Assembly (NCBI RefSeq): GCF_000143415.4
Contig: NW_003314415.1
Coordinates: forward strand, 223,407-261,321
Direction: 5' to 3'
DNA length: 37,915 bases
Source of the DNA: Selaginella moellendorffii
Lineage: Eukaryota; Plantae; Lycopodiophyta
The position numbers and the translations under genes were made by a program. A model generated the notes under the pieces. The model ran no database searches. It was given only the letters and a program-made list of their open reading frames with translations, and was not told the DNA's origin. Shown piece after piece: positions 2,086 through 22,948 of this stretch (the first letter of the stretch is position 1; every line of letters begins with the position of its first letter).

Positions 2086-2197
2086 TGACATGAACCACAG
2101 GAATATTCCAAGAATATTCCATGGCCTGTGGGATTTAAGGCCGTAACGCCTTAAGGGTTGGGAGGTTGGCCTAGGGTTCGCTCTCTTGTTCGTTTCA
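2086..2197 (+). repeat. 5' LTR (112 bp)
   Basis: TGACATGAACC...GTTCGTTTCA. Differs from 7009-7116 by 4 transitions and one 4-bp indel. Confidence 0.95.
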
Positions 2198-2198
2198 T

Positions 2199-2210
2199 TG
2201 GTATCGGAGC
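2199..2210 (+). other. Primer-binding site (tRNA-iMet)
   Basis: TGGTATCGGAGC one base after the LTR end. Canonical form is TGGTATCAGAGC. Confidence 0.9.
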
Positions 2211-2227
2211 AGCACGTTCTTTTGGGG

Positions 2228-5200
2228 ATGGCGGGAGAGCAAGATATTGATCCTGATGAGGAGTATGGCGTTAGTGATGATAGCCATGACGATGCGGAAG
2301 AGACTCTTGATGATGTTGTTCTGCGGCAAGGACGCCAGATTTCTGCGGTTCAGAGCGACATAAAGGAGGTTAAGGATTCCGTCAATCTAATTAAGGATTT
2401 CTTGCTTCACATGGACCCTCAAGGATTGAATCGATCTCATGTCCGTGATTACCATTGGTACATCAAGCATGCCAAGGATTATGGTATTATGGAATGGAAA
2501 TCATCACCGGATGTTTGTGATAGTCAAGAGGTTGATTCTTGGTTGGAATTGTGGGAAAGTTGTTGGTCTCACAATCCTTGTGAGGATAAGGTGAAGATAG
2601 ATTTCTTTGTGACGAAGCTTACGGGCCATGCTTCTTCGTGGTGGAAGAACTACATCAAAGCTAATCCGAAGCTGACTTCTTGGACTGATTTGACAAAGGT
2701 TTTCTGCGCTTCGTTTGTCAAGAAGTTTGAAGAGGTTGATCTCGTGAATCAGTTGTTATAGATCCAGCAAGGGACTTTGTCTTTGGATGTGTATGCTCGC
2801 AAGTTCCGTGATCTTTGCCTTAGTCTCACGGGCACCTACAATGAGCTGCTAAAGGTGCAATGTTTTATCAAAGGATTGAGCTCGGTGGATGTGCAGTAGA
2901 AGGTCAAGAAGGATTTTCCAGCAACATTGACTGATGCTATCACTAAGGCTCAAATCTTTTTGCCCAAACCGTCGGTCAACTCGGTCAACGCTGGTCAAAA
3001 GGATGGTCTCCGGGGTGGTCAACGTGATGACCAACCCACCAATACTTCATTTTCAGGGAAGAAACAGCTGTTGCTTCGTCATAGCTCGAAGAGTGGAGAT
3101 GGCAATGAGGCAAAAAGACATCAGTTAGACCAACAAGAGAAGGACAAGGTGGAGGGCAATTGTTTTCGTTGTCACAAGGCTGGACATCATGGCAAGGATT
3201 GTCCTCTTGTGAAGGGATCAAAGAATGCTAAGGTGAATGTGGTGGAATCCATTGTGGATACAGCTCAGGCATCTGCTGTGGTGGCTCTTCCACACCCTGT
3301 GGCAAAAATTCAAGAATCTAAGTCTCGAGTTCGTATCAACTCTGTAGAGATTAATGGTTCTATGTGCAATCAACTTGTGAAGGCCAAAGGGGACATTCAA
3401 GGACATGCTGTTAGTATTCTTTTCGATCCAGGTGCTACACACAACTTTTTGAGCTTTAAGGTGGTGAAGAAACTTGGTTTGCCTGTGGAAAAGAGTTCAG
3501 TAATCTATGAGGTGGTTATGGCAGATGGACATAGCACTCGTATTTACGGTGAATGGGCTCCGAGTGTTCCTTTGACGGTTCAAGGGATTCTCGACCATCC
3601 TTCGTTTCAGGTTATGGATCTTGGTCGCACAGACGTTATTCTTGGGAAGGAATGGTTTTATGACAGGAAGCCAGGGATCGATTGGGAGTGTAATGTTCTG
3701 CGTATCGAAGTTGGTGGCACTATAAAAGAGATTGTCGGGACAGACAATAGTGATACTCCATTGATTAACGCTTTGGAGTTGGTGACATGCATGCATGAGA
3801 TAGCTAATTCTTTTGTGGTGTACCCATTTCTTTCTAATATGATCATGTCTGATTTGGAGTACGTTCGTGGGCATGAGACACGGTGGATTCCATTCAGGAG
3901 GAGTTCCGTGACGTATTTCCGGATGAGTTACCTGATGGTTTGCCTCCAGAACGTGGAATTCAGCATGAGATTGATTTGGTTCCTGGAGCTACTCCTTTTC
4001 AGCGACAACTGACTCGTACTAGTCCCGCTGAAGATGAAGAGATTAATAGGCAGCTTGCTGAATACCTTCGGAAAGGGTGGTTACGGATTAGCAAGTCTCC
4101 TTGGGCTGCTCCAGTGGTGATGGTCAAAAAGAAAGATGGTACATGGCGTCTTTGCGTGAACTACAAGGGATTAAATGATAGGACAGTGAAGAATATGTTC
4201 CCGATCCCTCGTATCGATGATTTGCTTGATCGTCTTCGTGGAGCTTGATATTTTTCGAAGATTGATTTGAGGCAAGGATATCATCAGATTTGTGTCAAGC
4301 CAGAGGATGTTCCAAAAACTGCATTTCGAACAAGGACAGGTCACTACGAGTTTTTAGTGATGCCGTTTGGTTTGACAAATGCTCCTGCAACTTTTCAGAG
4401 ATTGATGAATCACGTTCTACAACCTTACTTGGGAAAGTTTGCAATTGATTATTTTGATGATATCTTAGTATTCAGCTCTTCCGTGGAGGAACATAAGATG
4501 CATGTACGAAGTGTTTTACAGCTTTTGAGGGACAACAAGCTCTACTCGAAATTATCCAAGTGCGAGTTTTTTTAGAGGAGATTGGATATCTCGGGCATTT
4601 GATTTCGGTACATGGAGTGAGAGCTGATCCCACAAAGATTCAGGCCGTGGTTGATTGGCTTATACCTTCCACAGTGCATGATCTCCGTAGTTTCCTTGGT
4701 ATGGTTGGAGTTTTTTGACGATTTGTGAAGGACTTTTCAGGGATAGCAGCCCCTTTAACTGATCTTCTCTAGAATACATCGAAACATGCTATTATTCATG
4801 GTTGGGATGAGAAGTGTGAAGTGGCATTTCAACGTTTGAAGCAATGTTGTATCTCTGCTCCAGTGTTGAAGATTTTTGATCCTGAAAAGCCTCTTGTGGT
4901 CGAGACAGATGCAAGTGACATTGCTATTGGAGCTGTTTTGCTTCAAGTTGGGCATCCTCTTGCGTACATGAGCCATAAGTTTGATGCCACACAGCGGAAT
5001 TGGCCTACTCGAGACAAGGAGTTGTATGCTGTGATTGCTGCTGTGAAGGAATGGCGACATTATCTTTATGGATCGGACTTCCATATGGATTCAGACCATC
5101 AATCTCTCCAATATTTCAGTTGACAAAAGGATCTTTGAGGCCGCCTTGCTCGTTGGCAAGAGTTCCTGTAGGAAATGTCTGTTAAGATCCGGTACAAGCA

Positions 5201-6760
5201 TGGAGGTGACAATAAGGTGGCTGATGCGTTATCCAGGATGGTAAATTCTATCTCATTCGTGAAGTTATCCAGCGATCTCTTGGATGAGCTTAAGGAGTTT
5301 GTTGACTTCGACTCCTTTATCACTGATATTTGCGTGAAGGTTTTGTTGAGGGACGCCTCTACAGATTTGAAGGGTGACAAGTTTGCGTCATTCGAAATAC
5401 GAGATGGAATCCTGGTGAAGAAGGGAGTGTAGTGGTTCCTCGTGTTGACAAACTCATCAAACGGATTTTGGTTGAGTGTCATTATGTGCCAAGTGCTGGG
5501 CATCCGGGGGTATTGAGAACGTATATGTTGGTGAAGAGGCATTTCTTTTGGCCTGGGATGAAGTCAGATGTTGAGAAGTACGTACGTGGTTGCTTGACCT
5601 ACCAGGCGGTCAAAGTTGATCATTAGAAGCTCGCTGGCCTCTATCATCCTTTACATGTACCTGAGAATAAGTGGGATAGCATCTCGATGGACTTTATCAC
5701 TAGTTTGCCCAAAACCTTTCGAGGAAATGATGCTATTTGGGTTGTTGTGGATCGTTTGACAAAGATGGCTCACTTTTTCCCTATGAAGACAATGATAAAA
5801 GCTTCTGAACTTGCTCAGTTGTTTGTAGACCGGTTATTTAGTCTCTATGGTTTGCCAGGTGACATTGTGAGTGATCGAGATCCTAAGTTCACGTCCAAGT
5901 TTTGGCAAACAGTCTTTGAAAAACTAGAGACTAAACTGAGCATGAGTAGTGGTGAGCATCCACAATCTGATGGGCAGATAGAGCGCATGAATCAGCTATT
6001 AGAAGATATGCTACGGTCTTTTGTGGGAAACTTGACTCGATAGGGAGTATGGGAAAAATACTTGCCTTTGCTTCAGTTTGCTCACAATAGCGCTCATCAA
6101 TCGGCTATTGGCATGTCTCCTTTTATGGCGATGTATGGCTATGAGCCTAGGTCTCCTGTGAGTTTGAATTTAGCTTTGGTTCGGGTTCCTCATGCTTGTG
6201 ATTTCCTGGAGGATATGCAAGACAAGCTTGAGTTGGCAAAATTGAACATGAGGCAAACTCAAGAACGAGACAAAAGATTGGCTGATGAGCATCGTCATCA
6301 TCAAGAGTACAAAGTTGGTGACAAGGTTTTCCTTAAGCTGTCGAATGCACAACAATCTCTAAAAGGAAGTGGTAGTGCTAAGTTGTCCCCATGGTATTGT
6401 GGGCCTTGGACAATTTTACAGCGTGTGGGGGATCTTGCATACACTTTGGATTTGCCAGTTAGTTCGAAGATTCATCCAACATTCCATGTGAGCAAACTTA
6501 AAGTGTGTTTGCACTCTGGTGATATCGTGGATCAGTCCATCATCCAGGTTCCAGAGATTGATGCAGAGAAGGCTGGTCCGGCCAATATTCTTGCTCAAAG
6601 ATTGGTGAAAACACACCGGAAAACAACTAGGGAGTTGTTAGTTCAATGGAATGGTTATTCCATGGACGAAGCTACATGGGAAACTGAGGATGACATGAAG
6701 AGAGTGTTTCCGAGTTTTGGTTATGACTTGGATGACATTCCTGAGGAAGGGGAAAATTGA
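2228..6760 (+). pseudogene. Gag-Pol polyprotein with multiple stops and frameshifts
   Basis: Gag KLTGHASSWW, zinc knuckle CFRCHKAGHHGKDC, protease LFDPGATHNF, RT YFDDIL, RH ETDASDIAIGAVL, INT IVSDRDPKFTS...QSDGQIER, chromodomain LLVQWNGYSMDEATWE. Confidence 0.95.
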
Positions 6761-7008
6761 GTTTTATAGCCGTATTGCTATATGATTTGAGCTGTTTGTT
6801 CTATTCTCATTCTCTTGTTTTCCATGACCATATTGTCATGTGAGAAAGCCGTATTGCTTTCTTTCTTTCGTGACCGTTTGTTGCGACGTTGGTGTTGCCG
6901 TTTGCACATCTTTTCTCCATGGCCATATTGCCTTGGACTCCCTTCATGTGAGGCTCGTTTAGCTTCTCGAGGCTGCCGTATGTGGCTGGGTCATGAGGGA
7001 GGGGAGAA

Positions 7009-7116
7009 TGACACGAACCACAAGAATATTCCAAGAATATTCTATGGCCTGTGGGATTTAAGGCCATAACGCCTTAAGGGTTGGGAGGTTGGCCTATCGC
7101 TCTCTTGTTCGTTTCA
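7009..7116 (+). repeat. 3' LTR (108 bp), preceded by PPT GAGGGAGGGGAGAA
   Basis: Direct repeat of 2086-2197. Confidence 0.95.
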
Positions 7117-7512
7117 ACCTCTAAATTCTATAGATATGCCAAATAAGTGAATTTAGACACTTTTCATAAATAGCATTTGGGACCAAAATGAAACTAACAC
7201 AAAGGGCATGATAGCAAGAGTGTTTGTCAGACACAGTAAACTATCATCTAGCGAATATTGAAGGACTAGTCTCAATATCGCTGGGGTTCCCAACACTAGC
7301 AAGTGCAAGTCAACGAATGAGTTTCTCTAACCAGGTCAAGTATGCTTAACAAATAGCATGTAGAAATTCCGTCTTTAAGCTCATCTGGTCAAGTGCACAT
7401 GCGATGACCAGTTTCTCAATTAGCTTGAGTGGAGATCATAAAAGGAACCAGTAGTACTGACCTCCTACTGTTGTGATAGTAAGGAAAGAGTGTCCATAAG
7501 GACTGGCCGACA
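7117..7512. repeat. LTR-like repeat (family E), right part
   Basis: Aligns to ~26005-26400 and ends ...GGCCGACA at the junction with a minus-strand integrase. Confidence 0.75.
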
Positions 7513-9628
7513 AACTGGAACAGTGTGCCCCAAAACTTCCCCGTAAACCTCGAATTTCTATCCGAGATCATCTCTTCAGGAAGACCATGAACCCATATGA
7601 CTTCATGGAAAAAGAGCTTTGCTGCTTATTTCGCATTCACTATTCCCACAGTTGGAATGAAGTGTGCAATCTTTGACAACCGATCCACAACCACCATCAA
7701 AGTATCATAACCCTTAGATTTCGGCAAACAAGTGACGAAATCAAGTGTCACACTTTGAAATGGCTATGCCGGTGTTGGAATGCACTACAACTTTCCAGCT
7801 TGCTTCTCAGTTCTACACTTACATTGCTGGCATATAGGGCAAGAACGAACATAATCCACTACATCACCTTCCATACTAGACCAGAAAAATTCCTTTTTCA
7901 ATGAAGCTAGAGTCTTTGCCATGGATCACTTCCATATGTCTTATGCCATTTTTGCTTATAAAATATAAGCCTATCCCGAACTGAGAAGTGAAACATCGCA
8001 TTAGTGCGACTAGCAACTTTCGCTGCTTCGCTAGTAGGCTCTGCTTCAACAGCCCCGCATGGCATAAGATTGCCTTTGCCAATGGATCACTTCCATATAA
8101 AGCCTAAACATCCTCTAACCAGTCTAAACTAATTGCCAATATTGCCCGGAATTAAGCTTGACGACTCAACGCATCTGGAAAATATTGTCTTTACCAGGTT
8201 TATATATGATTTCAATATCATATCTAGCAAGCTTCTCTTGCCAACGAGCCTGCTTCAGCGTAAGCTTAGGCTGTGTAGCAAAGTAGCTTAGTGTGTTACT
8301 ATCTGTATAAACCTTGATGTGTCCACCCAAGTAATGTCTGTAGTGTTCCAGGGCCAACACTATAGCAAACATTTCTTTCTCATGCGTTAGCCATCTTCAT
8401 TGAGTTTCATCCAATTTCTTGGAATAGAACACAATAGGACAACCATGTCGTCTTAGTGTAACACCAACCACTTTGTCATAATCTTGCTGTAACATGGCAC
8501 CAATAGCATAACCAAATGCATCACAATGCACTTCGAAGGGTTTATCAAGATCTGGGATCTTGAGAATAAGAACTATAGTCAAGATCTCCTTCAACTGTAC
8601 AAAAGCACATTAACAAGCTAGTGTCCAATGAAATGGAATACTACTCTTCGTTAACTCAGTCAACAGAAGAGCAATTCTTGCAAAATTGTGGATAAACTTG
8701 CAATAGTATCCCACCAAACTGAGAAAAGAACAAACATTTGATATAGTGGTCAGGATTTCCCAGGACTTCACCACTTCCACCTTCTTTGGATCGACCTCAA
8801 TTACGCCACCACCAACTATATGTCTGAGAAAGTTTATGCGCAATTGTCCAAAAGTGCATTTACTTTCCTTGACATACAATTGGTGTTCACGCAATTTTTG
8901 AAACACCAGCTCCAAGTGTTTTAAATGATCCTTCAACGTTTTGCTGAAGACTAGAATATTGGCGATATATAGGACAACAAATGTGTCCAAATAATCTCCA
9001 AATATTCTATCCATCATAGTGCTAAACGTTGCTGGAGCATTGCATAACCCAAACGGCATGACAAGAAACTTATAAGATCCATACCGAGTCTTAAAAGTTG
9101 TCTTCTCCACATCCTAATCTGCCACCCGTATCAAATGATACCCGGATCGCAAATCAAGTTGCATAAAATATTTAGCCTTTAAAAGTTGGTCAAATAAGTC
9201 GTCAATGCGAGGCAAAGGATAACTATTTTTAACCCTGATCTTATTGAGTGCCCGATAGTCAATACACATCCTCATGGTTCCATCCTTTCTCATAACAAAA
9301 AGGACTGGTGCTTTATAAGGTGATTTGTTTAGTTGGATATGACTTTTGTCAAAAAGCTCCGTGAATTGTTTCTTGAATTCAGCCATCTTCTTGATGTTCA
9401 AACGATATGGAGCTTTTGTAGGTGGTTTAGAACCCGAAATAACCTCAATCTGATGATCAACCTCATGGCTGGGAGGTAGCCCTGGTGGCAAATCCTTCAA
9501 GAAGATATCCTGATTCTCCAATATCTTCTTTGGTACAGGATCAACCCTGTTGCCGATTCGAATTGAGTCACCAACACCCTCAGCTTCCATCACTTGAACC
9601 CAAAAGGTTTAACATCCCCTCTTAGCTG
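7513..9628 (-). mobile_element. Degraded Ty3/Gypsy pol fragment (RT-RH-INT), copy B
   Basis: [47 protein letters not shown] and integrase MISDRNSRFTGKFW. Fused directly to the 3' end of RLK1 at ~9628. Confidence 0.92.
7937..8069. mobile_element. ~130-bp insertion with 11-bp terminal inverted repeats (MITE or mini-LTR-like)
   Basis: TCTTATGCCAT (7939-7949) and ATGGCATAAGA (8059-8069). Flanked by a ~23-bp direct repeat TTTGCC(A)ATGGATCACTTCCATAT. Confidence 0.55.
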
Positions 9629-11293
9629 GTCCAGGAGCTTGTCGTCAATAAGCTCAATGACGTTGCCACTGTGAAACATGCTCAACGCGGTTTCGCCCAG
9701 GAAGCACAGTTGTGAGGAGGATGAGGAGGAAGAGGAGGATGGAGGATGGAACTGGATGGTGCGCCTGGAGCTGACGAGCTCGAGCAGCACGATTCCAAAG
9801 CTGTAAACGTCAGTCTTGTCCATGACTTTGGTGTGGAGCCACTCGGGTGCCATGTATCCGGGAGTTCCTCGCATGACAGTCACCACTTGGCTCTTTCCCC
9901 GCTCGGCAAGCTTGCTCAGGCCAAAGTCGGAGATTCTGGCTCGTAAGTTCTCGTCCAGGAGGATGTTTTGAGGTTTGATATCCAGGTGAAGAACTTGCTC
10001 CCAGCATCCTTCATGGAGGTATGTGAGTCCTCGAGCAACATCTATCGCGATTGAGTGTCTCTGATTCCAGTTTAACAGCAGATTTGCTGATTCGCCACCT
10101 TTGTCATCATCGTTCTTGGTGAAGATCCACTTGTCCAGTGATCCATTGGGCATGAACTCGTAGACAAGCAATGCAGCTGGTCCCTGGATGCAAAATCCCC
10201 GGAGCTTTACCAGGTTGAAGTGGTGAATGCTGCCAATGGACATTACCTCGGCCTTGAACTGCGAGTGTCCTTTCGACGAGCCTTGGATCTCTACGTCCAT
10301 CTTCTTCACAGCAACGAGGCTCCCATCCGCAAGCTCTCCTTTGAAGACGGATCCAAATCCTCCAGCTCCAAGCATGAGCTCGGGATCAAAGTTTCTAGTT
10401 GCCATCTTCAAGTCGTGATAGCTAAACTGGTGCAGAAGTATCTCATCGAGCCTCATTCCTTCGATGAGCGCTTGCTTTTCCATGCGCCTCCTCCGAGATC
10501 TTCTCCACTTCCTGGTTGCTACGAAGATTACGACGCTAAGCACCACCCCGGCCACAGCGCTTGCTACCCCAGCGATCACTCCCTCATAATTCTTTTTGCT
10601 TCGAATGGACTGTGGAAGATTACTATCAATGACATTCCAGGTGATATTTCTCAAGATTCCAATGCCTGGATCATACCCAAGCTGCCTCCACACTTGCTCG
10701 TTCACAGCCACAGCGTTTGGAGCACAGGGCTCCGTGAACGAATGATCCCTGAGACACCCGGCTGGGGAGTAGCATTCAGCTACCATTCTAGCGACCGCAG
10801 TCCGTCCGTTTGGAGCTAAAACTTGGATGTTTTTCGAGCACAAGCTTCGGTCTTGGGTATACCATCCAGTGGCCAGCGCTGCCATGGGTTCCATATTCCA
10901 TTGCGAGGACGTGCACGGCCTGAGAGACCCCGGATTTGAGAGGTTGAAGCTTGTGGCATAGAGGACGGCATTGTTGGTCCCTTGTAAATTTGGAGAGCAG
11001 GCGAAAGTCCTGTAAGCCAGGCCTGGGACGCAGCAATTCGGGCAGTCTGGAACGATGGTGTCATTGAAAATGAAGCCGGAGATGGGCTTGCAAACTTCAG
11101 AATCGCTGAGATATGGCTCGGATTGATTGCTCGACAGGTAGCAGGATGAATTGCGGAGTGAACGGTTGCCGCTGAGCATGGGCTCCGGGAAACAAAGAGA
11201 TCCATTCGGGCAGTCGCTTAACGAAGAACATACCTGTTGTTGGGCTTGCGAGTGGAAGCTCCTGGTGCTACATAGCACGATCATGAAGCACAT
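9590..11293 (-). CDS. Kiwellin-ectodomain receptor-like kinase type 1 (RLK1), non-RD, C-terminally truncated
   Basis: Hydrophobic N-terminus. Kiwellin/ripening-related motifs [49 protein letters not shown] and [26 protein letters not shown] followed by RKWRR. Kinase [25 protein letters not shown]. Subdomain XI is replaced by Gypsy sequence after ~9629. The ancestral ATG (11312) is +1 out of frame; in-frame ATGs are at 11353 and 11293. Confidence 0.85.
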
Positions 11294-11349
11294 GAGAATT
11301 CGACACCTCCATAGTTCAGTAAATACCACTGTTCTTGGACACCTGGAAA

Positions 11350-11586
11350 CCATAGAAATCAGAGACTATGAGATCATGTCTCTCTCGTTGTTTCGGCCCA
11401 CAGACTTAAAGTTTGGCAGCTGGCTGCAGCTATCTTTCAGTGTCTTGGTTTTTCTGGGCTGTAGACGAAAAGAGGAATTCCTCCCAGGGACCCGCAATGC
11501 TTTAACAAGCCAAGAGGTTCGATCTTGAGACCGCAAAGACTTCAGACTTTTTATAGAGCTTTTAAACCAGTTTACCCGTGACAGCC
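11350..11586. promoter_or_regulatory. Shared divergent 5' module between type 1 and type 2 RLKs (copy 1 of 3)
   Basis: Direct copy at ~12222-12502 and inverted copy at ~15525-15770. It lies between opposed start codons. Confidence 0.6.
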
Positions 11587-11760
11587 ATGGATCATCGCAG
11601 CACTTTCTTCGCGCTAGAAAGCGACCAATGATGTCTGTGGTGGTGAAGATGCTCGAGGGTCCCATGGATGTGTTCCCTCAGCTGGAGAGACCCGCTGCAC
11701 AGGATTCGTCGCTCCTGGTGAGCATCAGCGAGAGCTCGGAAGTGCAGATAGATATCTGAA
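11587..11760 (+). pseudogene. Internally deleted RLK2 copy (first ~10 codons joined to the last ~45)
   Basis: ATGGATCATCGCAGCACTTTCTTCGCGCT matches 12503 onward. It is joined at ~11619 to sequence matching ~14133-14270 (MSVVVKMLEG...ESS). Confidence 0.88.
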
Positions 11761-12059
11761 GAATTTAATAAGTTATTACATATATATTTAGAATCCTTAA
11801 TGAGAAACGGGAAGGACTCGAGGTGGAAGATCTGGAGGAGTTCAGCAAATGACTCAAGAGATCATCGAAACGGCATATTATAATCCCAACAACTAATGAA
11901 TGAATGACCAAAACATTTGCTTCGTCAGAAACTTCATTTTATTAGCAAGAAAGATCAATGCACGAGTTCAGTTGAAAAACCATTGACAACAGACGCGGTA
12001 TACAAGCACCACACGGCACGGCAATGCCAACCCTAAAAGTGGAAATGACAGCAATGCTG

Positions 12060-12135
12060 GAAGAATTGTACAGCCAGCAGCACTGCATTCAATTCATGGC
12101 TAGAAATCACCAATCTGCCGCTTCTCTTTCTTTTT
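12060..12135 (+). pseudogene. 5' remnant of the 3D-domain gene (MARNHQSAASL); a second remnant is at ~14480-14530
   Basis: Matches the reverse complement of ~15258-15325 (AAGAATTATACAGCCAGCAGCGCTGCATTCATTCATGGCTAAAAATC). Confidence 0.75.
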
Positions 12136-12502
12136 CGCAAAAGACCAATGCTGATGTTGGTATGAGTTCAGTTGAAAAACCATTTGCTGAAATCTTTATG
12201 TTATGACAACAGTCGCGGTTGTCATAGAAAATCAGAGACTATGACATCACGTAAGTCTCATTAGTGTCTCTCTCGTCGTTTCGGCCCACAGACTCAAAGT
12301 TTGCAGCTGGCTGCAGGTATCTTTCAGTGTCATGGTTTTCTGGGCTGGCAGACTAAAAGAAAAATTCCTCCCACGGACCCTCGCAATGCTTTAACAAGTC
12401 AAAAGCTTGACAAGTCTAGCTCCACATGAGACGGCAAAAGACTTCAGACTTTTTCTAGAGCTTTTAAACCATTTTACCCGCGACACGTTTGCAATTCCAG
12501 CC

Positions 12503-14299
12503 ATGGATCATCGCAGCAGCACTTTCTTCGCGCTCGCGATGATCTCACTCGTCAGCGCCACCGCGCAGCATTTCTCCTCCTCTTGCGGCACGAGATGCGA
12601 CTCTAGGCGCGATTGTTCTGGCGGCCTCGTTTGCAATCCTGTTAGCAAGACCTGCGATGGCGATCCAGGAGCTAGCACCCTTTCCTGCCCAATTCCCGGC
12701 TGCGAGCCCGCCCAGAGCTTCATCTACTCGAATGCCACCGCCCACGATCCCGAGTACTGCGTCGACAACAACACCTACCAGTTCTTCAATTGCTCGCCTA
12801 AAGAGCAGTCTCTCAACTTCGCGGCTCTCTACTACACCGAGCTGGAGGGAATCCCCACGGCATGCAATCGGTCCACGCCTTACAAGAACTCGGAGCTCCT
12901 GGCAAACATGGCCACCGGATGGTTTGCCAGTGGATCCTCGTGCTTCAAAGAGATTGTGATCACGGCAGAGAATGGGATGAGCGTCACGGCGACGGTGGTG
13001 GACATTTGTGCATCAACGATCGGGTGTAGCCCATTGACTGGATACTACGAGCCGTGCACGCCCAGATCGCTGGGAGGGACGAGAGGTGTGTGGGAAGCGC
13101 TGGGGCAGACGTATTTTGATAATGTGTTGCAAGTCACTTGGAAGTGGAAGGGCGAGGATTCGAAAAAACGCACTCTTTTCATTGCACTGGTTTCTAGTGG
13201 AGCGCTCGTTGCCTTGGCGCTCTTAGGCATTTTGTGGTGGAAGGTCGTGAGACGGTCCAATGCCGCCAAGAACAAGCTCCATCTGGGGGATCTCACGGAT
13301 GCCCCGCGGCAAATCAGGTACCAAGAGTTGTATCGAGCGACCAAGGGATTCCAGAGCAAGGTGGGAGAGGGAGGGTTTGGGACTGTGTTCAAGGGGACGC
13401 TGCCCAGCGGAGAGATTGTGGCGGTCAAGAGGATTGGCGGTGGATCGCGGCAGGGGGACAAGCAATTTAAAGCGGAGGTGATGTCGATTGGCAGCATCCA
13501 TCACCTCAATCTCGTCAAGCTGGTTGGATTTTGCCTGCATTCTCGCCACAACTTACTCATCTACGAGTTCCTCGCCAATGGCTCGCTGGATAGATGGATT
13601 TTTGCCAAGGACAAGTATCTGCCCTGGGCAACCAGGCTTTCCATCGCGCTCGACGTCGCTCGAGGGCTTGCGTATCTCCACGATGGATGCCGCGAGAAGG
13701 TACTCCATCTAGACATCAAGCCCCAGAACATCCTCCTGGATGAGAAGATGAATGCCAAAATCGCCGACTTTGGATTCTCCAAGCTCATTGACAAGGACAA
13801 AACTCATGTCGTGACAGTCATGCGGGGTACGGTGGGATACATGGCTCCCGAGTGGCTCCACTCTCGTGTGACGGACAAGACGGACGTCTATAGCTTTGGG
13901 ATCGTCCTCCTGGAGCTCGTCTGCTGCATGAAGGCCGTGGAGTATCCCTCGGACTCACAGATGGACGTTGGGTTCCTCGCCCAGACTGCTTTCAACAAGC
14001 TCGACAGTGGAAACGCCATGGACTTGGTGGACGATCGGCTGGTCAAAGCCGAGGACGGTGGTGGTTTATCCTTGAGTGGCTTCGAGAACATCATCCGGAT
14101 CGGGCTATGGTGTGCACAGGAGGATCCTTTGCAGCGACCAACGATGTCTGTGGTGGTGAAGATGCTCGAGGGTGCCATGGATGTGTTGGCGTTCCCTCAG
14201 CTGGAGAGACCCGCTGCACAGGATTCATCGCTCCTGGTGAGCAGCAGCGAGAGCTCGGGATTGCAAATCTCCATCTCGGTCTCGGACTTGGCTCGCTAA
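12503..14299 (+). CDS. Intact kissper-kiwellin receptor-like kinase type 2 (RLK2), non-RD SD-2b-like kinase, 598 aa, intronless
   Basis: Signal peptide MDHRSSTFFALAMISLVSATA. Six-Cys kissper SCGTRCDSRRDCSGGLVC...TCDGDP...SC. Kiwellin core NCSP, MATGWF, CFKEIVITAENGMSVTATVVDIC, GC, EPC, VWEALG, VTW. TM LFIALVSSGALVALALLGILWW. Complete kinase [45 protein letters not shown]. Confidence 0.93.
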   Translation: MDHRSSTFFALAMISLVSATAQHFSSSCGTRCDSRRDCSGGLVCNPVSKTCDGDPGASTLSCPIPGCEPAQSFIYSNATAHDPEYCVDNNTYQFFNCSPKEQSLNFAALYYTELEGIPTACNRSTPYKNSELLANMATGWFASGSSCFKEIVITAENGMSVTATVVDICASTIGCSPLTGYYEPCTPRSLGGTRGVWEALGQTYFDNVLQVTWKWKGEDSKKRTLFIALVSSGALVALALLGILWWKVVRRSNAAKNKLHLGDLTDAPRQIRYQELYRATKGFQSKVGEGGFGTVFKGTLPSGEIVAVKRIGGGSRQGDKQFKAEVMSIGSIHHLNLVKLVGFCLHSRHNLLIYEFLANGSLDRWIFAKDKYLPWATRLSIALDVARGLAYLHDGCREKVLHLDIKPQNILLDEKMNAKIADFGFSKLIDKDKTHVVTVMRGTVGYMAPEWLHSRVTDKTDVYSFGIVLLELVCCMKAVEYPSDSQMDVGFLAQTAFNKLDSGNAMDLVDDRLVKAEDGGGLSLSGFENIIRIGLWCAQEDPLQRPTMSVVVKMLEGAMDVLAFPQLERPAAQDSSLLVSSSESSGLQISISVSDLAR

Positions 14300-14672
14300 G
14301 TAGCTTATTAACTTATTAAGCAGGTCAATCGAACGGCAATTTACATATATTTTTAGAATCCTCGATGAGAAACCAAAAGGTCTTGAGGTGGACGATATTC
14401 ATTCAGTAGTTTATAAGCAGTTTCGATGATCTGTTTTGCTGAACTCCTCCAGATCGCCACACGGCTGCCAAACCTCACAGGAAGAATTGTAATTGTCTAA
14501 AAATCACCAACCTGCTGCTTCTCTTTCTTTTTTGCGAAAGACCAATGCTGATTTCAGAATCAGAACAATGAATTTTAATTATAGAATTCCTGCTGCTAAG
14601 AGATAAAAATAGGTGAGCTGTTTATTAGTCTCAATAGCAAACCAAATCTTATGATATGCAAGCATTTCCAAT

Positions 14673-15290
14673 CTAGCTGCCATAGTCTTGGATCTGGCAG
14701 TTCGGATCAATATTGGCATCCCATGATTCAGCATCCTGTAGCTCATGCTCAATATTATGGTAGTTACTCTCAGATCCCACGTAGAAGTCCATGTTGCATT
14801 CATTGTTCTTCTCCTTGTCTTTCTTGCAGGCATCATCCACCCGAACACATCCATTGTGTTGCCTGCCGTTGGGAAGCGCTAAGCCTTGGAGCAGATCTAT
14901 CTTGAGATGTGATCCAAAGGGATACTTCCCTTCATCTGGAACAGCAATAGACACGTAAAGCTGCAAGTCGTTCTCTCGACTGCCCTTGGGACCATCAGTC
15001 ACGAAGTAGCAGGTGCAATCGTTGTCTTGACAATTCACGTAGCGCCCGTCCTTCAACCTTCCAGCACCCTCAACGTGGATTTTTGAACTGAAACCGCCAC
15101 AGACGGAAGCTATCGCGTTGCCATCGCAATCCTTGATTTCTGTGTTTGAGGCCTCGTTGCCGCATAGAACACTCTCCTCTACAGTCCAGTAGTACGTGAA
15201 ACTCTCTCTGGCTGCCTCCACTGAGAATCCCAGAGCCATGCAAGCGAAAAAGAGCACAAGAGAAGCGGAAGATCGATGATTTTTAGCCAT
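14673..15290 (-). CDS. Secreted Cys-rich 3D-domain (MltA/DPBB-like) protein, 205 aa, intronless
   Basis: Signal peptide LVLFFACMALGFSVEA. Motifs FTYYW..EE, EGAGRLKDG, SIAVPD...PFGS.L.I..L.G..LPNG..HNGCVRVDD and MDFYVG resemble microbial 3D-domain proteins. Ten Cys in the mature chain and a TATA box upstream. Confidence 0.72.
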   Translation of the reverse strand: MAKNHRSSASLVLFFACMALGFSVEAARESFTYYWTVEESVLCGNEASNTEIKDCDGNAIASVCGGFSSKIHVEGAGRLKDGRYVNCQDNDCTCYFVTDGPKGSRENDLQLYVSIAVPDEGKYPFGSHLKIDLLQGLALPNGRQHNGCVRVDDACKKDKEKNNECNMDFYVGSESNYHNIEHELQDAESWDANIDPNCQIQDYGS

Positions 15291-15345
15291 GAATGAATGC
15301 AGCGCTGCTGGCTGTATAATTCTTGCATGACCTCGGAGCACTAGC

Positions 15346-15352
15346 TTTTATA
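15346..15352 (-). promoter_or_regulatory. TATA box of the 3D-domain gene
   Basis: CCTATAAAAG on the minus strand, ~55 bp upstream of the ATG at 15290. Confidence 0.6.
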
Positions 15353-15467
15353 GGAGCCAGGCATCGCCGTGCCATGTGGTGTGTGTATACCGCGTCTGTT
15401 GTGGGACCACCAGCCAGGGCAATCGTTGTTTTCACCCTCGATGTGGCCTCGTTGGTGCTCCTCTGGA

Positions 15468-15524
15468 TACGTGAAACTCTCTCCACTGAGAATCCTCGAA
15501 GAAAGTGCTGCTGCGATGATCCAT
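15468..15524 (-). pseudogene. RLK2 start (MDHRSSTFF) fused to a fragment of the 3D gene 5' coding region
   Basis: 15497-15524 is the reverse complement of the RLK2 start. 15468-15495 matches ~15193-15230 with a small deletion. Confidence 0.7.
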
Positions 15525-15805
15525 GGCTGGAATTGCAAACGTAAACTGGTTTAAAAGCTCTAGAAAGTCTTTTGTGGCATGTGGAGCTAGACTTGTCAGG
15601 CTTTTGACTTGTTCAAGCATTGCGAGGGTCCGGGGAGAAATTGCTCTTTTAGTCTGCCAGCCCAGAAGAACCTTGACACTGAAAGATACCTGCAGCCAGC
15701 TGCCAAACTTGAAGTCTGTGGGCCGAAGAGACACTAATGAGACTTACATGATCTCTGATTTTCTATGGTTTCCAGGTGCCCAAGAACAGTGGTATTTACT
15801 AAACT

Positions 15806-17933
15806 ATGGAGGTGGCGATTCTCATGTGCTTCATGATCGTGCTATGTAGCACCCTCGCAAGCCCAACAACAGGTATGTTCTTCGTTAAGCGACTGCCCGA
15901 ATGGATCTCTTTGTTTCCCGGAGCCCATGCTCAGCGGCAACCATTCACTCCGCAATTCATCCTGCTACCTATCGAGCAATCAATCCGAGCCATATCTCAG
16001 CGATTCCGAAGCCCATCTCCATAGTCAATTTCACTGCCACCATCGCTCCAGATTGCCCGAATTGCTGCGTCCCAGGCCTGGCTTACAGGACTTTCACCTG
16101 CTCTCCAAATTTACAAGGGACCAACAATGTTCTTCAGTAACTCCACTCTCAAGTCGTAAAGGCTGGTTCCTTGGTACTTGGAGCTTCTCCCATCATCTTT
16201 CTGTTGGCTCTACTCAAGACCATGGCTTGAGATAAAAGTCTGCGGCGAGTTTTTCTACAAAGTACCTCCACGTGAAGACCCCCCCTCTTGCTCTTTGTTG
16301 GTTTCGTGCACGACGAAACTTTCTGTCGCGGCTCTTTGCTGGTTTCGTGCCTTAACGAAACTCAGCCCAGTTTTGGTTTTCTGGTGAATAAAAGCCCTGT
16401 TTAACAAGGGACCAACAATGCCGTCCTCTATGTCACAAGCTTCAACCTCTCAAATCCGGGGTTTCTCAGGCCGTGCACGTCCTCGCAATGGAATATGGAA
16501 CCCATGGCAGCGCTGGCCACTGGATGGTATACCCAAGACCGAAGCTTGTGCTCGAAAAACATCCAAGTTTTAGCTCCAAACGGACGGACTGCGGTCGCTA
16601 GAATGGTGGCTGAATGCTACTCCCCAGGCGCGTGTCTCAGGGATCATTCGTTCACGGAGCCCTGTGCTCCAAACGCTGTGGCTGCGAACGAGCAAGTGTG
16701 GAGGCAGCTTGGGTATGATCCAGGCATTGGAATCTTGAGAAATATCACCTGGAATGTCATTGATAGTAATCTTCCACAATCCATTCGAAGCAAAAAGAAT
16801 TATCAGGGAGTGATCTCTGGGGTAGCAAGCGCTGTGGCCGGGGTGGTGCTTAGCGTCGTAATCTTCGTAGCAACCAGGAAGTGGAGAAGATCTCGGAGGA
16901 GGCGCATGGAAAAGCAAGCGCTCATCGAAGGAATGAGGCTCGATGAGATACTTCCGCACCAGTTTAGCTATCACGACTTGAAGATGGCAACTAGAAACTT
17001 TGATCCCGAGCTCACGCTTGGAGCTGGAGGATTTGGATCCGTCTTCAAAGGAGAGCTTGCGGATGGGAGCCTCGTTGCTGTGAAGAAGATGGACGTAGAA
17101 ATCCAAGGCTCGTCGAAAGGACACTCGCAGTTCAAGGCCGAGGTAATGTCCATTGGCAGCATTCACCACTTCAACCTGGTAAAGCTCCGGGGATTTTGCA
17201 TCCAGGGACCAGCTGCATTGCTTGTCTACGAGTTCATACCCAATGGATCACTGGACAAGTGGATCTTCATCAAGAACGATGATGACAAAGGTGGCGGATC
17301 AGCAAACCTGATGTTGAACTGGACCAGAGACACTCAATACCTCCATGAAGGATGCCGGGAGCAAGTTCTTCACCTGGATATCAAACCTCAAAACATCCTC
17401 CTGGACGAGAACTTACGAGCCAGAATCTCCGACTTTGGCCTGAGCAAGCTTGCCGAGCGGGGAAAGAGGCAAGTGGTGACTGTCATGCGAGGAACTCCCG
17501 GATACATGGCACCCGAGTGGCTCCACACCAAAGTCACGGATAAGACCGACGTTTACAGCTTTGGAATCGTGCTGCTCGAGCTCGTCAGCTCCAAGCGCAC
17601 CATCCAGTTCCATCCTCCATCCTCCTCTTCCTCCTCATCCTCCTCACAACCGCGCTTCCTGGGCGAAACCGCGCTGAGCATGTTTCACAGTGCAACGTCG
17701 TCGAGCTTATTGACGACAAGCTCCTGGACAATGATCTCGACAGCACTAGCAGTGGCTTAGAGCTCAAGGATGTCGAGAGGTACGTGAAAATCGGACTGTG
17801 GTGCATCCAACTCGAGGCAGCAATCCGGCCCTCTATGAGAAACGTCTTGGATATGCTCGAAGGTAACACAGACGTTCTTGACTTGCCACCACCTTCAAGT
17901 GATGGTAGCTCCAGAAGCTTGAGCTTGCTGTGA
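15806..17933 (+). pseudogene. Kiwellin-RLK type 1 pseudogene (RLK3), inverted paralog of RLK1
   Basis: Near-identical to the reverse complement of 9629-11312. Lesions: 11-bp deletion in the signal peptide, 274-bp insertion, ~30-bp deletion in kinase VIa (NWTRDTQYLHE) and a -1 frameshift at ~17692. It keeps the original start MEVAILM and the C-terminal tail LWCIQ..RPSM...SLSLL*. Confidence 0.9.
16130..16403. mobile_element. 274-bp insertion in the RLK3 ectodomain
   Basis: Absent from RLK1. Flanked by a 17-bp direct repeat ACAAGGGACCAACAATG (16113-16129 and 16404-16420). Can be read as TGTT...AACA (16128-16406). Contains AATAAA and a duplicated GTTTCG..CGAAAC hairpin. Confidence 0.75.
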
Positions 17934-18140
17934 TGGATCCTACTTGGTTCCTACTTCAGCTCCCTGTGATGTTATCCTCTAGTTCTCACAGTGAGACTAT
18001 GATCATCAAGACTGAGATAGAGTCTCACAAGTGTTGACGTTATATTGACAGAGGGGAGTCACCTTCTTCCAAGTTTTTCTCTCTACTTCTAGCCAGCGGG
18101 AACGAGGAAGCATACCGGAGACAATATACATTTCAAAGAA

Positions 18141-19008
18141 TCAAGGGTCTTCGTCTGCACCACCATCAGCCTCACAAAATCTGAAGTTGGGTTCTACCTT
18201 CATTGCTCACGCTAATTTGGCCAGCAATGACTTATTAAATACCTGTGATCCAAATCTCCTGCCTCAGTAAAAGTACAAAGTGCCTGGTTACCTTCTCAAT
18301 GGGGATTTCATGTTGCTTGCACCAAGCGACTGTTATTCGAGGATCCATGTAGTTAATCTTTGACGTTCCCAGCGCCTGGAGGTTTGCCCTTTTTAACTTT
18401 CCCCAAGTCTGTTGCAAGTTCCTCACGCAGTGTCTACCAATAGCAAAGCGTCAGCCTCAAACAAACCATAAAGAAAAATGGACCTTTAACTCTGCAATCT
18501 TTGCCTCCAATCTTTCCATCTGAGCACTATGGCCCTTGGATACTGTCTGTTGATGATTACATGGAATTGTGACTTGTCAGCAAAGTGCTAACCAAACAGA
18601 ATGTTCTCTTACCTCCTTATTTGCTCAGGAGTATTCTGCAGTTTTCTTGTTAAGAGTCGCACCAAGCGTCTCCTTCAACTGTAACAAGTAAATTGTTAGA
18701 TCATTTTGGCCTTGACAAAGTAAAAGTCACCTACGTTTTCAAAGTATACGATGCATTATACGTTCAAAACACCTTCACTGTTAGACCTTGCATGTACTTC
18801 TTCAGATGGGCATTAAGATTAGAAGTATCTAACTTGTCAAAGAGGTCAGCCCCTTCCTTTTTCCCTGTGTAACAGATAGCTCATCTCAATGAGGAAACAC
18901 ACAAGTCACAACATACCTTTCTTAAAATTGTGTATAGCATCATATACCTCTTTGTTTACAACCACGAAGTTTTGGTACCTTGTGGAGTCTTTACCCAGAA
19001 AATCAAAC
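18141..19008 (-). pseudogene. TOP1: DNA topoisomerase I (type IB) 3' fragment with introns
   Basis: Exons FDFLGKDSTRY, DLFDKLDTSNLNAHL...[39 protein letters not shown] (catalytic Tyr) and [17 protein letters not shown] introns, e.g. 18243-18291 (49 bp). In-frame stops; 5' part missing. Confidence 0.93.
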
Positions 19009-19099
19009 TGCAAATATGTGAACCATAGATCATAAAACAATGGTGATGTTAAAGAAGTTCCCAAAGCTTTTTGTAAACTTTTATGAGGACCTGTGGCAT

Positions 19100-19290
19100 A
19101 ATCATGTCATATATCATCATTTAACTTTTTATAATTAATGCACACTTTCCATTTCCCTCCCTTCTTTAGTGTTACTATAACAAGTGACAACTAATTTGAA
19201 TTCTCCACTTCAAATATGAAGTCAGCTTTGATCAACTTCATTAGCTCAGCAAACTACTCTTACATGGTGGCAATTGCCACTTCTTCCTAA
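19100..19290 (-). mobile_element. Small Gypsy RT remnant
   Basis: Translates LIKADFIFEVENSN*LSLVIVTLKKGGKWKVCINYKK. Confidence 0.7.
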
Positions 19291-19744
19291 ATCAAGATTG
19301 TCAAGATTATAACCTTGAGTGTCAAGGTCATAATCTTGACTATTGTGCTTCATTCTCCCACGACTGAACAGAGCTTCTTCTCAAGGCTTTTATTGCTCCA
19401 TCATGTTGATTAGCTTTATTAGTGCTAGATTTCCTGTGAGTTTGCCCTTGAACTTGTTGAGTTGCTAATGGAATTTCTCATCATCATCATTTTCCTTGTC
19501 ATGCTCGTTCTCATTGTCCATTATTGTAGGCTGCTTTGGCTTGAGAGTGCAGATCTTGTTCAGAGCTCCGTGTTTTCTTTAGCGACCTGGTCGTTAATAC
19601 ATTGTGTCTCCACACATACTGTCCCCTAGAAGGATGTACCTTGAACACTCCTTTTGAGCTGCTGGATGTCACTCTGGATCTTGTTGAGCTTTGTGTCCAG
19701 GGGCTGGAAGACAACAGCGTTAATCATAGTCTGCACTCCAGAAA

Positions 19745-21890
19745 AATGCTGTGATGTCATTTAGGCTCATAAATGCACTAGCAACATTTCAATGACTTAT
19801 GAATAAGATCTTTGAGCCATACCTTGGCAAGTTTATTAGAATGCAGCTTGACAACTTTTACATATATAGCAATTGAGCAACTCATTTGGAAAAAGTACAA
19901 TAACATTTGTAAGACTAAATGAATCAAAAGATTGCCTAAATCTGGATAAATGTTAAATTGCAAGCATATGTTAGGATGAGACTTTCTACATAAACATAAA
20001 CATTGACAAGTATTTTATCACAATGATTCTATTCCAAAAGGGGAGTAGAGGATATATATTTCCCCTCTACTATGCTAGCTGACAACTTTAAGGACTTGAG
20101 TTAAGTTATCCACTTTTGGAGAAGCAAGCTAGAAGTATCATATATGAGGTGGAGAAATTCAAACACTACTTATGGGGAAGATATTTTGTGTTCTTCACAA
20201 ATAATGCTGCATTAAAGTACATTACAAACAAGCCAACATTTGTTAGGAAAATTTCCAGATGGATGATAGCTTTCGCAAAGTATAACTTTAAGTTTCACCA
20301 TGAGAAAAACACTTAAGCAAGATTGGTTAGAGCTTTGGATTATAAAATACCTCTGGAGCAAGAAGAGATCAATTTATGCCAAGAAGAAGATTATGAAGTC
20401 TTAACAATGAGTGTTGACATGGAAGAATATTGGAAAATTTACAATTTTTTGAGAATAGAGAGTTTTCTAGAAGGATATAAAGGCATTGAGAACTGGAAAA
20501 TTATACGTAAGTTAAAACCATTCACACTAATAGGTGATTAACTAATAACATGCTTTAGAGAGCATTTAGACAAAATGAACAAAAAGAGATCATAAAGCAG
20601 TGTCATGAAGGATATTATGGTGGACACTTCTCCCATAATTATACAATCAATAAGATTGTGAATATAGGATATTTTTGGCAAACATTATTCCAGGACGTAA
20701 GGGAATGATGCAAGTCATGTCACACTTGTTAGGCCATCAAAAGAAGAATCCTTCGACTAGGAAGTCTTCATCAAATTTTGCCAATAGGACTATTTAAGAA
20801 ATGGGGGATAGATTTTGTAGGACTAATTCCAATGGCATTAAGTCAAAAAAGATTTATCTTGGTGGCAACAAACCTTATTAAGTGGGTTGAAGCAATAATA
20901 ACTAAAAGCAAAGGTGCCACCACACCTGAATACAATTTTTATATTCACATCCTATTTATAAGGACTGTCTTTACAAATGTTACTTGGAAGCTGACAATGT
21001 GACTTTTGTGGTGGCTCTCAAGGCATGTGGTAGCCTGGGAGCTCTAGCAGCCAGGAAGAACATTGAGGTCGAGATCTAGTGGAGAGCCATTTGGTAAAAA
21101 ACTTCTAAAAAGCTAAATTTATTATTATTGAAAGAGATTTATATAACTTCATATCAAGGAAGTTGTGGTAAGCTTTCTTATCTAGAATATATGTATAAGG
21201 TTTGGTTACCTGTTAGAGATTGTCACTAACTAGGTCTCACACTTCTACAATGAGGTGGTTAAAACACTAATGAGGAAGCTGTCAATAAAACATTGGTAGT
21301 CAACATCATACTATCCATAAATTAATAGTGGTGGAGAGAACAAATGGTGTATTGTGCAACATTCTAGTAAAATTAACCATCGAGAAGAAGAAAGATTGGG
21401 ATAAATAGCTGTTGACAACATTATGGGCTTACAAAACTATATATAAAGTAACAACAAACTTCACTCCTTTCTAGGTAGTTTATAGGACAAAAGTTATGTT
21501 TCCAATTGAATTGAAGATCCCAACTCTACAACTAGCATTGAAGCATGGACTAAGTGACAATGAAGACTTGTAATTAAGGCCTATTTAGCTTGAGGGGATG
21601 GATGAGAATCAACGTCAAGCTCTTCAACATCTGAAAGCAATTCAACAACAAAGAAACCACAGATTTGATAAGAAATTTGTAAAGGCTTTTTAGGTTGGTG
21701 ATTTGGTTATGAAGTATGATAGTAAGATTGATAAAACATTCCTAAAAAAGTTTCGTTTATGATAGGATGACCTATATCAGATTGTTGAGGTCAACAATAA
21801 TGGATTATACTTACTAACAGATCTTGATGGAAAATAACATGACACCTAAGTAAATGGATATAGGTTGAAAATGTCCCATATTCTACTATA
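19745..21890 (+). mobile_element. Heavily degraded Ty3/Gypsy pol (RT-RH-INT), non-chromovirus-like
   Basis: VMSFRLINALATFQ*LMNKIFEPYLGKF, EKFKHYLWGRYF, KWGIDFVGLIP, LWAYKTIYK and a GPY-like region near 21770. Confidence 0.82.
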
Positions 21891-22948
21891 AGACAACACT
21901 ACTATTGGGTTGTAAATAATTTGCATGGATTACAACCATATGGCTTGTTTGGGTGGGATTATATGATGGGAAATTTTTTTAGCTAAAAATGCCATATTCA
22001 AAGTCAAGGTGTACATATATACAAGGTATATATATACAAAATCATCCCTCTATACCTTTACCCTTACCACTTTACTATTCTACCACCACCTTTTCTTTAT
22101 GACCTAATATTTGAAGTCAAAATAAAAAACAAGTCCAATCAAACTTTCCTTTTTATATCCTATTACCCATCCACCTAACTTTATCACAAACCTTATCTTC
22201 CACCACTTTTATAAAATGATTTGGTATATAACTCTTATATTTAAGCATACCCTCCAACCTTGCAAAGTTTTCTACCACCATTTAAAAATATTTTTTTGTG
22301 TAATTTATATATTCAACAATGGTCATCTAAATTTACCACTTTTAATACACCAATATTTTATGAGATTAACAGCAAAACATAAAATATAATCCAAGGACTA
22401 TGTAAAGAAGAGCTTCATGACACCAAGGCATAAGAGCAGAGTGTAAAGTGATTCTAGCCTAACTTTTCTTTTCTAATTTTGCAATGTTCTTTCTTTAAGT
22501 CCTAAATATAAAAACTAAGAATTAATGGAAATCCTCTTCTTTTCTCTTTCTCTCAAGTCATAAAGCGAGTACCCATGAGACCTGTGTAGGGCTGCAGTGT
22601 TCCGAAATGTTGTCTTAGAGTCCTGTATGCTATTAGCCATTAGCTTTCGATATAACAACATCATAATAGTATGAAGAGAGGTTGAAGAGTTAGTGGGATC
22701 TTTATTGACTCCTTCACCAAAAAATTTACTCTCAATCATGTTGCTACTTTGTAAAATCCCTCTAAAGAATCATATAACAAGGATTTCCATATGTGGACAA
22801 TGCTTGGTGATCATGTAGAAAGCACCAATGGATCTTAGAGAGCATTTAATGGAGTATGAGATATGGATTATGGGGGAGATCATTTTGGTGAAGGATCATG
22901 GAAAAATGAAGTCTAGAGTTTTCTTTCCTCCTTTATCATCAAGTATGC

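Follow-up and report, generated by a model that had tools for sequence, protein, structure and literature searches.

A rearranged kiwellin receptor kinase locus of Selaginella moellendorffii as a probable decaying duplicate of an older three-gene block

In this study, the organization, relatives, divergence and transcription of a cluster of receptor kinase genes were investigated in a 37,915-nucleotide stretch of the Selaginella moellendorffii genome (contig NW_003314415.1, positions 223,407 to 261,321; scaffold GL377719.1 of assembly GCA_000143415.2), which is called the window and whose own numbering is used below. The cluster harbors two types of receptor kinase with kiwellin ectodomains, RLK1 and RLK2, together with D3, a gene for a putatively secreted 3D/MltA-like protein. 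By self-BLASTN and direct reading, we observed that the locus is an inverted and rearranged duplication of one ancestral block with the order RLK1(-), a spacer of about 280 bp, RLK2(+) and D3(+), and that it forms a palindrome whose left and right units meet near 14552-14598. The left unit consists of a first RLK1 copy (RLK1A), spacer A, a deleted RLK2, a D3 remnant, a second spacer copy, an intact RLK2 and again a D3 remnant, while the inverted right unit consists of a topoisomerase I (TopoI) fragment, a second RLK1 copy (RLK1B), spacer B, a fusion of the RLK2 start with a D3 piece, and the full D3. Only RLK2 and D3 are intact in the window. The original prediction, made from the letters of this stretch, had placed the RLK and D3 copies correctly, but most of what it counted as copies are fragments or pseudogenes rather than genes.

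The Pfam domains KWL1 and Pkinase were detected in three open reading frames, 9590-11353(-), 12407-14299(+) and 16495-17760(+), and the KWL1 (PF24300) scores of RLK1A, RLK2 and RLK1B were 80.3, 70.5 and 50.1 bits, respectively, with a gathering cut-off of 27. Both receptor types display a signal peptide, a single transmembrane segment and a kinase domain whose G-loop, VAxK, DFG and APE motifs are complete; a GYMAPE motif is present, and the catalytic loop read from the translation is HLD in both types, which makes them non-RD kinases. Such kinases are frequent among pattern-recognition receptors, and RLK2 is probably a cell-surface sensor. RLK2 (12503-14299, +) is an intact, intronless type-2 gene of 598 amino acids with neither frameshift nor stop (KWL1 1.9e-19, Pkinase 4.6e-46; transmembrane segment at 224-246), and a word-index search with its isolated ectodomain returned Selaginella paralogues only and no secreted kiwellins. 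RLK1A (9590-11312, -), a type-1 gene with KWL1 and Pkinase matches, is truncated at the 3' end. Judged by alignment to the intact RLK1 of scaffold GL377594.1, it has lost about 75 C-terminal codons including kinase subdomain XI, and its kinase match covers profile positions 6-199 of 263. The homology of RLK1A to other RLK1 copies ends at 9629, where a retroelement pol fragment with reverse transcriptase (8397-9628, -; Pfam RVT_1 in open reading frames 8610-9110 and 9114-9593) abuts and replaces its 3' end. RLK1B (15806-17933, +) is a type-1 pseudogene with five frameshifting deletions, and it carries a 291-bp insertion (16113-16404) flanked by a 17-nt direct duplication. In the contig sets described below, which are probably RNA, this insertion reached a very high word depth (up to ~2,670) and showed loose ends that continue in other sequence; a small repeat that is transcribed in abundance, like a short interspersed element or a miniature inverted-repeat transposable element, is its probable identity.

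With reference to the arrangement of these genes, the start codons of RLK1 and RLK2 were predicted to face away from each other across about 280 bp twice, and direct reading agrees: they stand at 11312(-)/11587(+) with the 274 bp of spacer A between them (11313-11586), and at 15524(-)/15806(+) with the 281 bp of spacer B (15525-15805) between an RLK2 remnant and RLK1B. The type-1 start codon at 11312 was located correctly, but a 1-nt insertion puts it out of frame, and the in-frame ATG of RLK1A is at 11293 instead. A third spacer copy, without RLK1 beside it, lies 5' of the intact RLK2 at 12223-12502, before the start at 12503, also as predicted. The two units correspond as inverted repeats, with 9629-10988 equal to 17729-16401 at 95.4% and 10969-11611 equal to 16129-15497 at 84.7%; the spacer copies match at 78% (11351-11615 versus 12223-12534) and 83% (12223-12530 versus 15767-15497), all by self-BLASTN.

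The expectation that D3 sequence follows every RLK2 copy was likewise upheld, at 11986-12155, 14494-14552, 15495-15468 and the full gene at 15290-14673. In the left unit, an internally deleted RLK2 (11587-11749, +) has its first 29 nt (11587-11615) joined to its last ~130 nt (11620-11749), the latter matching 14133-14268 in the RLK2 3' end at 90% by self-BLASTN. It is followed by a D3 remnant (11986-12155, +), an inverted match to 15402-15244 that comprises the upstream region and the first ~36-59 nt of the coding sequence; the D3 5' remnant behind the intact RLK2 (14494-14552, +) has the same junction as 12097-12155. Since both left-unit remnants have one derived junction, a segment of spacer, RLK2 and D3 remnant was duplicated in tandem, after which the first RLK2 was internally deleted. 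In the right unit, local alignments revealed that the remnant of the RLK2 start (15524-15497) runs directly into 28 nt of D3 sequence (15495-15468), together 15468-15524(-). This fusion, in which the first 28 nt of RLK2 are kept, is the scar of the deletion that took the RLK2 body, and the same deletion junction was found again on scaffold GL377627.1. The signal peptides of RLK2 and D3 start alike, with M-D-H-R-S-S and M-A-K-N-H-R-S-S, respectively (window 12503-12530 and 15290-15250(-)), the latter also in a solo D3 copy on scaffold GL377568.1; this likeness could be due to common 5' ancestry or to microhomology that favoured a deletion junction at 15497.

D3 (14673-15290, -) is an intact, intronless gene convergent with RLK2, and encodes 205 amino acids, 182 of them in the mature protein, with a signal-peptide-like N-terminus. 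D3 itself gave no Pfam match at E <= 0.1 and no NCBIfam match at E <= 10, and only three other Selaginella proteins were matched in a word-index search. An exhaustive HMMER search with a profile from four Selaginella D3 sequences recovered 459 relatives; among the best 20 of these 459, all named relatives outside Selaginella are early-diverging fungi, including Entomophthorales and Dimargaritales, and no other plant is found among them. The fungal relatives come from Entomophthora, Conidiobolus, Neoconidiobolus, Basidiobolus, Dimargaris, Tieghemiomyces and Geosiphon, several being annotated as 3D-domain proteins. PF06725 was matched by 12 of the 49 aligned relatives (best E 2.4e-14), and the family profile matches YuiC, a 3D-domain enzyme of B. 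subtilis (E 1.3e-3). The AlphaFold2 model obtained from the 49-sequence alignment reached a pLDDT of 94.3, superseding a run from four Selaginella sequences alone (pLDDT 55). In Foldseek, the top 12 matches of the model are MltA-type lytic transglycosylases (prob 1.0; TM-score by query up to 0.57), below which kiwellin, barwin, expansin and cerato-platanin appear with weak scores. The earlier view that all three ectodomains are of the double-psi beta-barrel (DPBB) type thus agrees with the KWL1 matches of the receptors and the MltA-like fold of D3. The description of D3 as a 3D-domain protein is borne out by fold and relatives but not by a direct Pfam 3D match, and our data support a divergent 3D/MltA-like DPBB protein whose membership is transitive and structural, not direct.

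In the alignment of the 49 relatives, Asp153 of D3 is invariant, Asp168 is conserved in 44 and Asp118 or Asp119 in about 40. Asp119/153/168 line up with the 3D motif, the correspondence to MltA residues being by motif pattern and not by residue-level superposition. Three conserved aspartates, including the catalytic one, are described in MltA (D261/D297/D308) and YuiC (D129/D151/D162), of which MltA binds chitohexaose and YuiC cleaves penta-NAG (PMC4499186). D3 is predicted to cleave or bind glycans that contain N-acetylglucosamine, such as peptidoglycan or chitin. The range of its relatives fits a fungus-to-lycophyte horizontal transfer, and D3 was probably acquired horizontally; a literature search on horizontal gene transfer in Selaginella involving transglycosylases, and on the 3D domain or MltA in fungi, returned nothing relevant.

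The repeated unit of a divergent RLK1/RLK2 pair followed by D3, which the original prediction had proposed to seek at other loci, is present on four more scaffolds of S. moellendorffii: it recurs on GL377594.1, GL377585.1 and GL377627.1, and in a diverged form on GL377575.1. Together with the window these are the five RLK loci counted in this study. The window itself, with its TopoI fragment, has RLK1 in a truncated (A) and a frameshifted (B) copy, RLK2 in one intact copy and two remnants, and D3 in one intact copy and three remnants. GL377594.1 holds an intact TopoI, an intact RLK1 of 635 amino acids, an RLK2 with five frameshifts and a stop, and an intact D3. On GL377585.1, a TopoI fragment and an intact RLK1 are accompanied by two broken RLK2 copies and by two frameshifted copies and fragments of D3, while on GL377627.1, TopoI is in fragments, RLK1 is split by a 4.9-kb insertion, RLK2 is deleted as in the right unit of the window, and D3 is frameshifted. 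At the diverged GL377575.1, where no TopoI was found, RLK1 and RLK2 are intact and head-to-head, a second intact RLK2 copy is present, and D3 is reduced to two short 5' remnants beside this second RLK2; a peroxidase gene follows the head-to-head pair. A 1.6-kb repeat shared at 94% identity by GL377594.1 (17759-19361) and GL377575.1 (4260-5858, both in locus positions) adjoins a D3 5' remnant in GL377575.1, and is the probable mark of the insertion by which D3 was destroyed at that locus. Apart from the RLK loci, GL377568.1 harbors an intact D3 of 58% amino acid identity without RLK1 or RLK2: no kiwellin RLK was found within 10 kb, and the nearest kinase is only ~30% identical.

Accordingly, all three genes are intact at none of the five RLK loci, and both RLK partners at only one, GL377575.1. 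Intact RLK1 is found only on GL377594.1, GL377585.1 and GL377575.1, intact RLK2 only in the window and, twice, on GL377575.1, and intact D3 only in the window and on GL377594.1 and GL377568.1. The head-to-head orientation across a short spacer is also displayed on GL377594.1, GL377585.1 and GL377575.1; between the TopoI-flanked loci and GL377575.1, only ~30 nt just 5' of the RLK2 start codon and the region around the RLK1 start codon are conserved in the spacer. The TopoI 3' fragment of the window (18235-19100, -; Pfam Topo_C_assoc), a passenger copied with the block, has ~90% nucleotide identity to the TopoI flanks of GL377594.1, GL377627.1 and GL377585.1, and together with several kb more of flank it is common to the four scaffolds at 80-91% nucleotide identity. 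These flanks extend over 18235-22900 in the window and, by positions in the extracted loci, over 4170-5225 in GL377594.1, 1-2470 in GL377627.1 and 3400-7600 in GL377585.1. Among the four scaffolds with the flank, the intact TopoI gene (697 amino acids) occurs only on GL377594.1, which may therefore be the source locus. The loci were also considered as haplotype alleles, which was rejected because the flanks are at most ~91% identical in all pairs, and they were taken as paralogous.

For the analysis of divergence, dN, dS and their ratio omega were estimated by the Nei-Gojobori method. Among the receptor kinases, omega was 0.24-0.35 for the whole gene, 0.34-0.70 for the ectodomains and 0.13-0.24 for the kinase domains, and dS to the diverged GL377575.1 was about 0.3-0.45. 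The D3 copies of the window and GL377594.1, both RLK-linked, gave an omega of 1.11 (dN 0.096, dS 0.086), and over the same period the RLK1 ectodomain gave 0.70. RLK-linked D3 copies compared with the solo D3 of GL377568.1 displayed an omega of ~0.3 and a dS of ~0.8. For RLK1 of GL377594.1 versus GL377585.1, omega was 0.32 and dS 0.085; this dS equals that of D3, which fits co-duplication in one event. Frameshifts were noticed in three of the five RLK-linked D3 copies, and these, together with the omega near 1, fit relaxed constraint on linked D3.

With regard to transcription, Logan contigs of four public runs, from as many studies, were aligned to 12000-17950 with a minimum likeness of 98%. 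These runs probably represent RNA, according to an automated guess that is backed by coverage of gene bodies only: in these four runs, no contig covers the spacer and promoter stretches 12000-12397 and 15383-15780. Contigs with zero mismatches were obtained over RLK2 (12560-14398) and D3 (14603-15212), and one of them, 14134-15212, runs across the junction of the convergent RLK2 and D3, so that a misassembly at this point is less likely. Over RLK1B, the contigs show mismatches and lack the 291-bp insertion, and thus originate from a paralogue. The four runs contain the exact 31-mers of RLK1A at a share of 0.84-1.00, so the truncated RLK1A is probably transcribed too. Because the intact, transcribed RLK2 has the spacer but no adjoining RLK1, its expression does not require the paired configuration. 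The listed RNA contigs of all four runs end at or before 15212, 78 nt short of the D3 start codon, and this end is probably a break in the signal-peptide stretch common to paralogues.

We consider it probable that an older three-gene block gave rise to the window as a palindromic duplicate now in decay, which belongs to a birth-and-death receptor cluster that carries D3 by descent. The block was copied by segmental duplication, with the TopoI fragment and further flank, to at least four scaffolds, after which inversion, tandem duplication, internal deletions and mobile-element insertions altered its structure. The family would evolve by birth and death, its intact RLK1, RLK2 and D3 copies being dispersed among different loci. 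As far as reading frames can tell, RLK2 and D3 are the only working genes in the window. The head-to-head RLK pair may be an ancestral working unit, and D3 is most likely a passenger whose adjacency to the receptors appears inherited and not demonstrably functional. All five RLK loci descend from one arrangement and hence amount to one single observation, and the TopoI fragment with its flank was copied along with the block, so that it is 'co-duplicated' in the same sense as D3, a consequence of contiguity. Nor is intactness co-retained, as the intact pair of GL377575.1 has D3 remnants only and the intact D3 of GL377568.1 stands alone. The co-retained, co-regulated functional module that the original prediction had proposed is therefore not upheld, the linkage being one of common descent.

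Nevertheless, several points weigh against the decaying-duplicate interpretation. RLK2 is accompanied by D3 sequence at every one of the five RLK loci, even at the diverged GL377575.1, which means that the adjacency is old and survived many rearrangements. RLK1A, RLK2 and D3 of the window all occur in the same four probable RNA assemblies, though this is presence together and not co-regulation. Each of the three genes has intact copies somewhere in the genome, and these could act together in trans. Again, the omega near 1 of linked D3 and the raised omega of the RLK ectodomains, which are derived from few substitutions, could reflect diversifying co-evolution and not decay, and the frameshifts were read from a single 2010-era assembly. 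A true module acting in trans, with all variants summed, is nonetheless rather unlikely. In its fullest form, a fungal-type secreted MltA-like protein, probably horizontally acquired, would be coupled to the kiwellin RLK pair as a ligand-generating enzyme or a guarded bait and would act in trans between partly decayed loci, as a cell-surface counterpart of paired immune receptors with a decoy; we regard this as unlikely.

In an enzyme-plus-receptor module, D3 would degrade peptidoglycan or chitin of microbial walls, and an RLK1/RLK2 heteromer would perceive either the released pieces or D3 in complex with them; the linkage would serve co-regulation, and the genes could complement one another in trans between loci. 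The MltA-like fold of D3, the aspartate trio that lines up with the 3D motif, the binding of chitohexaose by MltA and the cleavage of penta-NAG by YuiC (PMC4499186) all point in this direction, as do the D3 sequence adjoining RLK2 at every RLK locus, the common presence of the three genes in the probable RNA assemblies and the non-RD character of both kinases. Against these stand the lack of any locus with three intact genes, the loss of D3 beside the intact pair of GL377575.1 and the fact that the D3 copy under purifying selection is the solo one of GL377568.1; the five loci are moreover one observation by descent, in which the TopoI fragment is 'linked' likewise. Kiwellins are known to bind proteins rather than glycans, and with all this considered, an enzyme-plus-receptor module is decidedly doubtful. 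D3 could also be a ligand or a guarded bait that binds the kiwellin ectodomain and is monitored by the receptor, so that D3 and the ectodomains co-evolve as in paired immune receptors with a decoy or in the SRK/SCR system. Kiwellins bind fungal effectors, and D3 is a fungal-type protein; here a gene for a secreted protein is tightly linked to one for a receptor kinase, and the omega values of linked D3 (1.11) and, for the same period, of the RLK1 ectodomain (0.70) would fit co-evolution. However, the omega near 1 and the frameshifts in three of the five linked copies fit decay too, intact partners are co-retained at no locus, and D3 is enzyme-like, with 182 mature residues and the 3D-motif aspartates, and not a small peptide ligand. 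A complex prediction of the RLK2 ectodomain (22-222) with mature D3 gave a score of 0.00, which lends no support but is no answer, counting neither for nor against binding. We give a ligand or bait very little probability.

An assembly artefact, in which the palindrome and fragments would arise from mis-joined haplotypes or paralogues in the draft assembly, was also weighed. The published S. moellendorffii assembly contains both haplotypes, and its 261-kb scaffold ends not far from the window. Yet the contigs, assembled independently in four public runs, carry no mismatch to RLK2 and D3, and one of them spans the RLK2-D3 junction; the exact words of RLK1A occur in full in several runs, and the RLK2-deletion junction of the right unit occurs on GL377627.1 as well, so that an artefact is highly improbable.

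Among known systems, the locus resembles birth-and-death clusters of plant receptor kinase and resistance genes in its tandem, inverted and segmental duplicates, transposon insertions, many pseudogenes and ectodomains that evolve faster than the kinase domains, and differs from them in that an unrelated, probably horizontally acquired secreted gene is carried along with the receptors. In common with the paired nucleotide-binding leucine-rich-repeat receptors (NLRs) RRS1/RPS4, RGA4/RGA5 and Pik-1/Pik-2, two genes of one receptor family diverge from a short spacer (~280 bp here) and are inherited as a unit. Here, however, they are receptor kinases, both with complete catalytic motifs and no obvious sensor/helper asymmetry, and neither RLK1 copy is intact in the window; the likeness is one of orientation only and any cooperation is putative. 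The sensor/helper-like pair of the original prediction is retained as a divergent orientation at several loci, and not as two intact partners in the window. The Brassica S-locus (SRK with SCR/SP11) is similar in the tight linkage of a receptor kinase gene to a secreted-protein gene, and SD2-5 'S-receptor-like' kinase is the NCBI label of paralogues at other loci (P0160, P0163); but D3, an enzyme-like DPBB protein of 182 residues, is no small cysteine-rich peptide, the partners are not retained together in intact form, and its binding or co-evolution is putative. The likeness is limited to linkage. Membership in neither the paired NLRs nor the S-locus holds. Considering single proteins, the RLK1 and RLK2 ectodomains match the KWL1 profile of the secreted kiwellins (maize ZmKWL1 and kiwifruit Act d 5; PF24300), but in these receptors a transmembrane segment and a kinase are joined to the kiwellin in one protein. 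D3 shares with the 3D-domain lytic transglycosylases MltA and YuiC (PF06725) the DPBB fold, the profile match to YuiC and the three aligned aspartates, but it falls below the Pfam threshold, has 12-16% identity to MltA and belongs to a plant genome with nearest relatives in fungi, and its activity is predicted.

Concerning the surroundings, the cluster lies in a transposon-rich stretch with Ty3/gypsy-type pol open reading frames (protease, reverse transcriptase, RNase H and chromodomain) at 2186-6760(+) and 23800-27000(-), and an inverted repeat of 1.6 kb with 85% identity (1-1590 and 35317-36851) brackets almost the whole window.

The literature searched holds no description of kiwellin-ectodomain receptor kinases or of their linkage to a 3D-domain gene, and what is new here is the physical association of D3 with the kiwellin RLK pair, together with the decay of the block. 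Should D3 and the kiwellin RLKs act together, they would represent the first case in plants of a pair of cell-surface receptors with a genetic tie to a secreted enzyme or bait, the latter encoded by a gene of apparent fungal origin, and the unknown ligand of kiwellin-type receptors would become experimentally approachable; the copies worth cloning are RLK2 and D3 from the window and RLK1 from GL377594.1 or GL377585.1. Repeated linkage inside segmental duplicates is, however, no evidence of function, and on present evidence the locus is mainly a clear case of birth-and-death evolution in a lycophyte receptor cluster.

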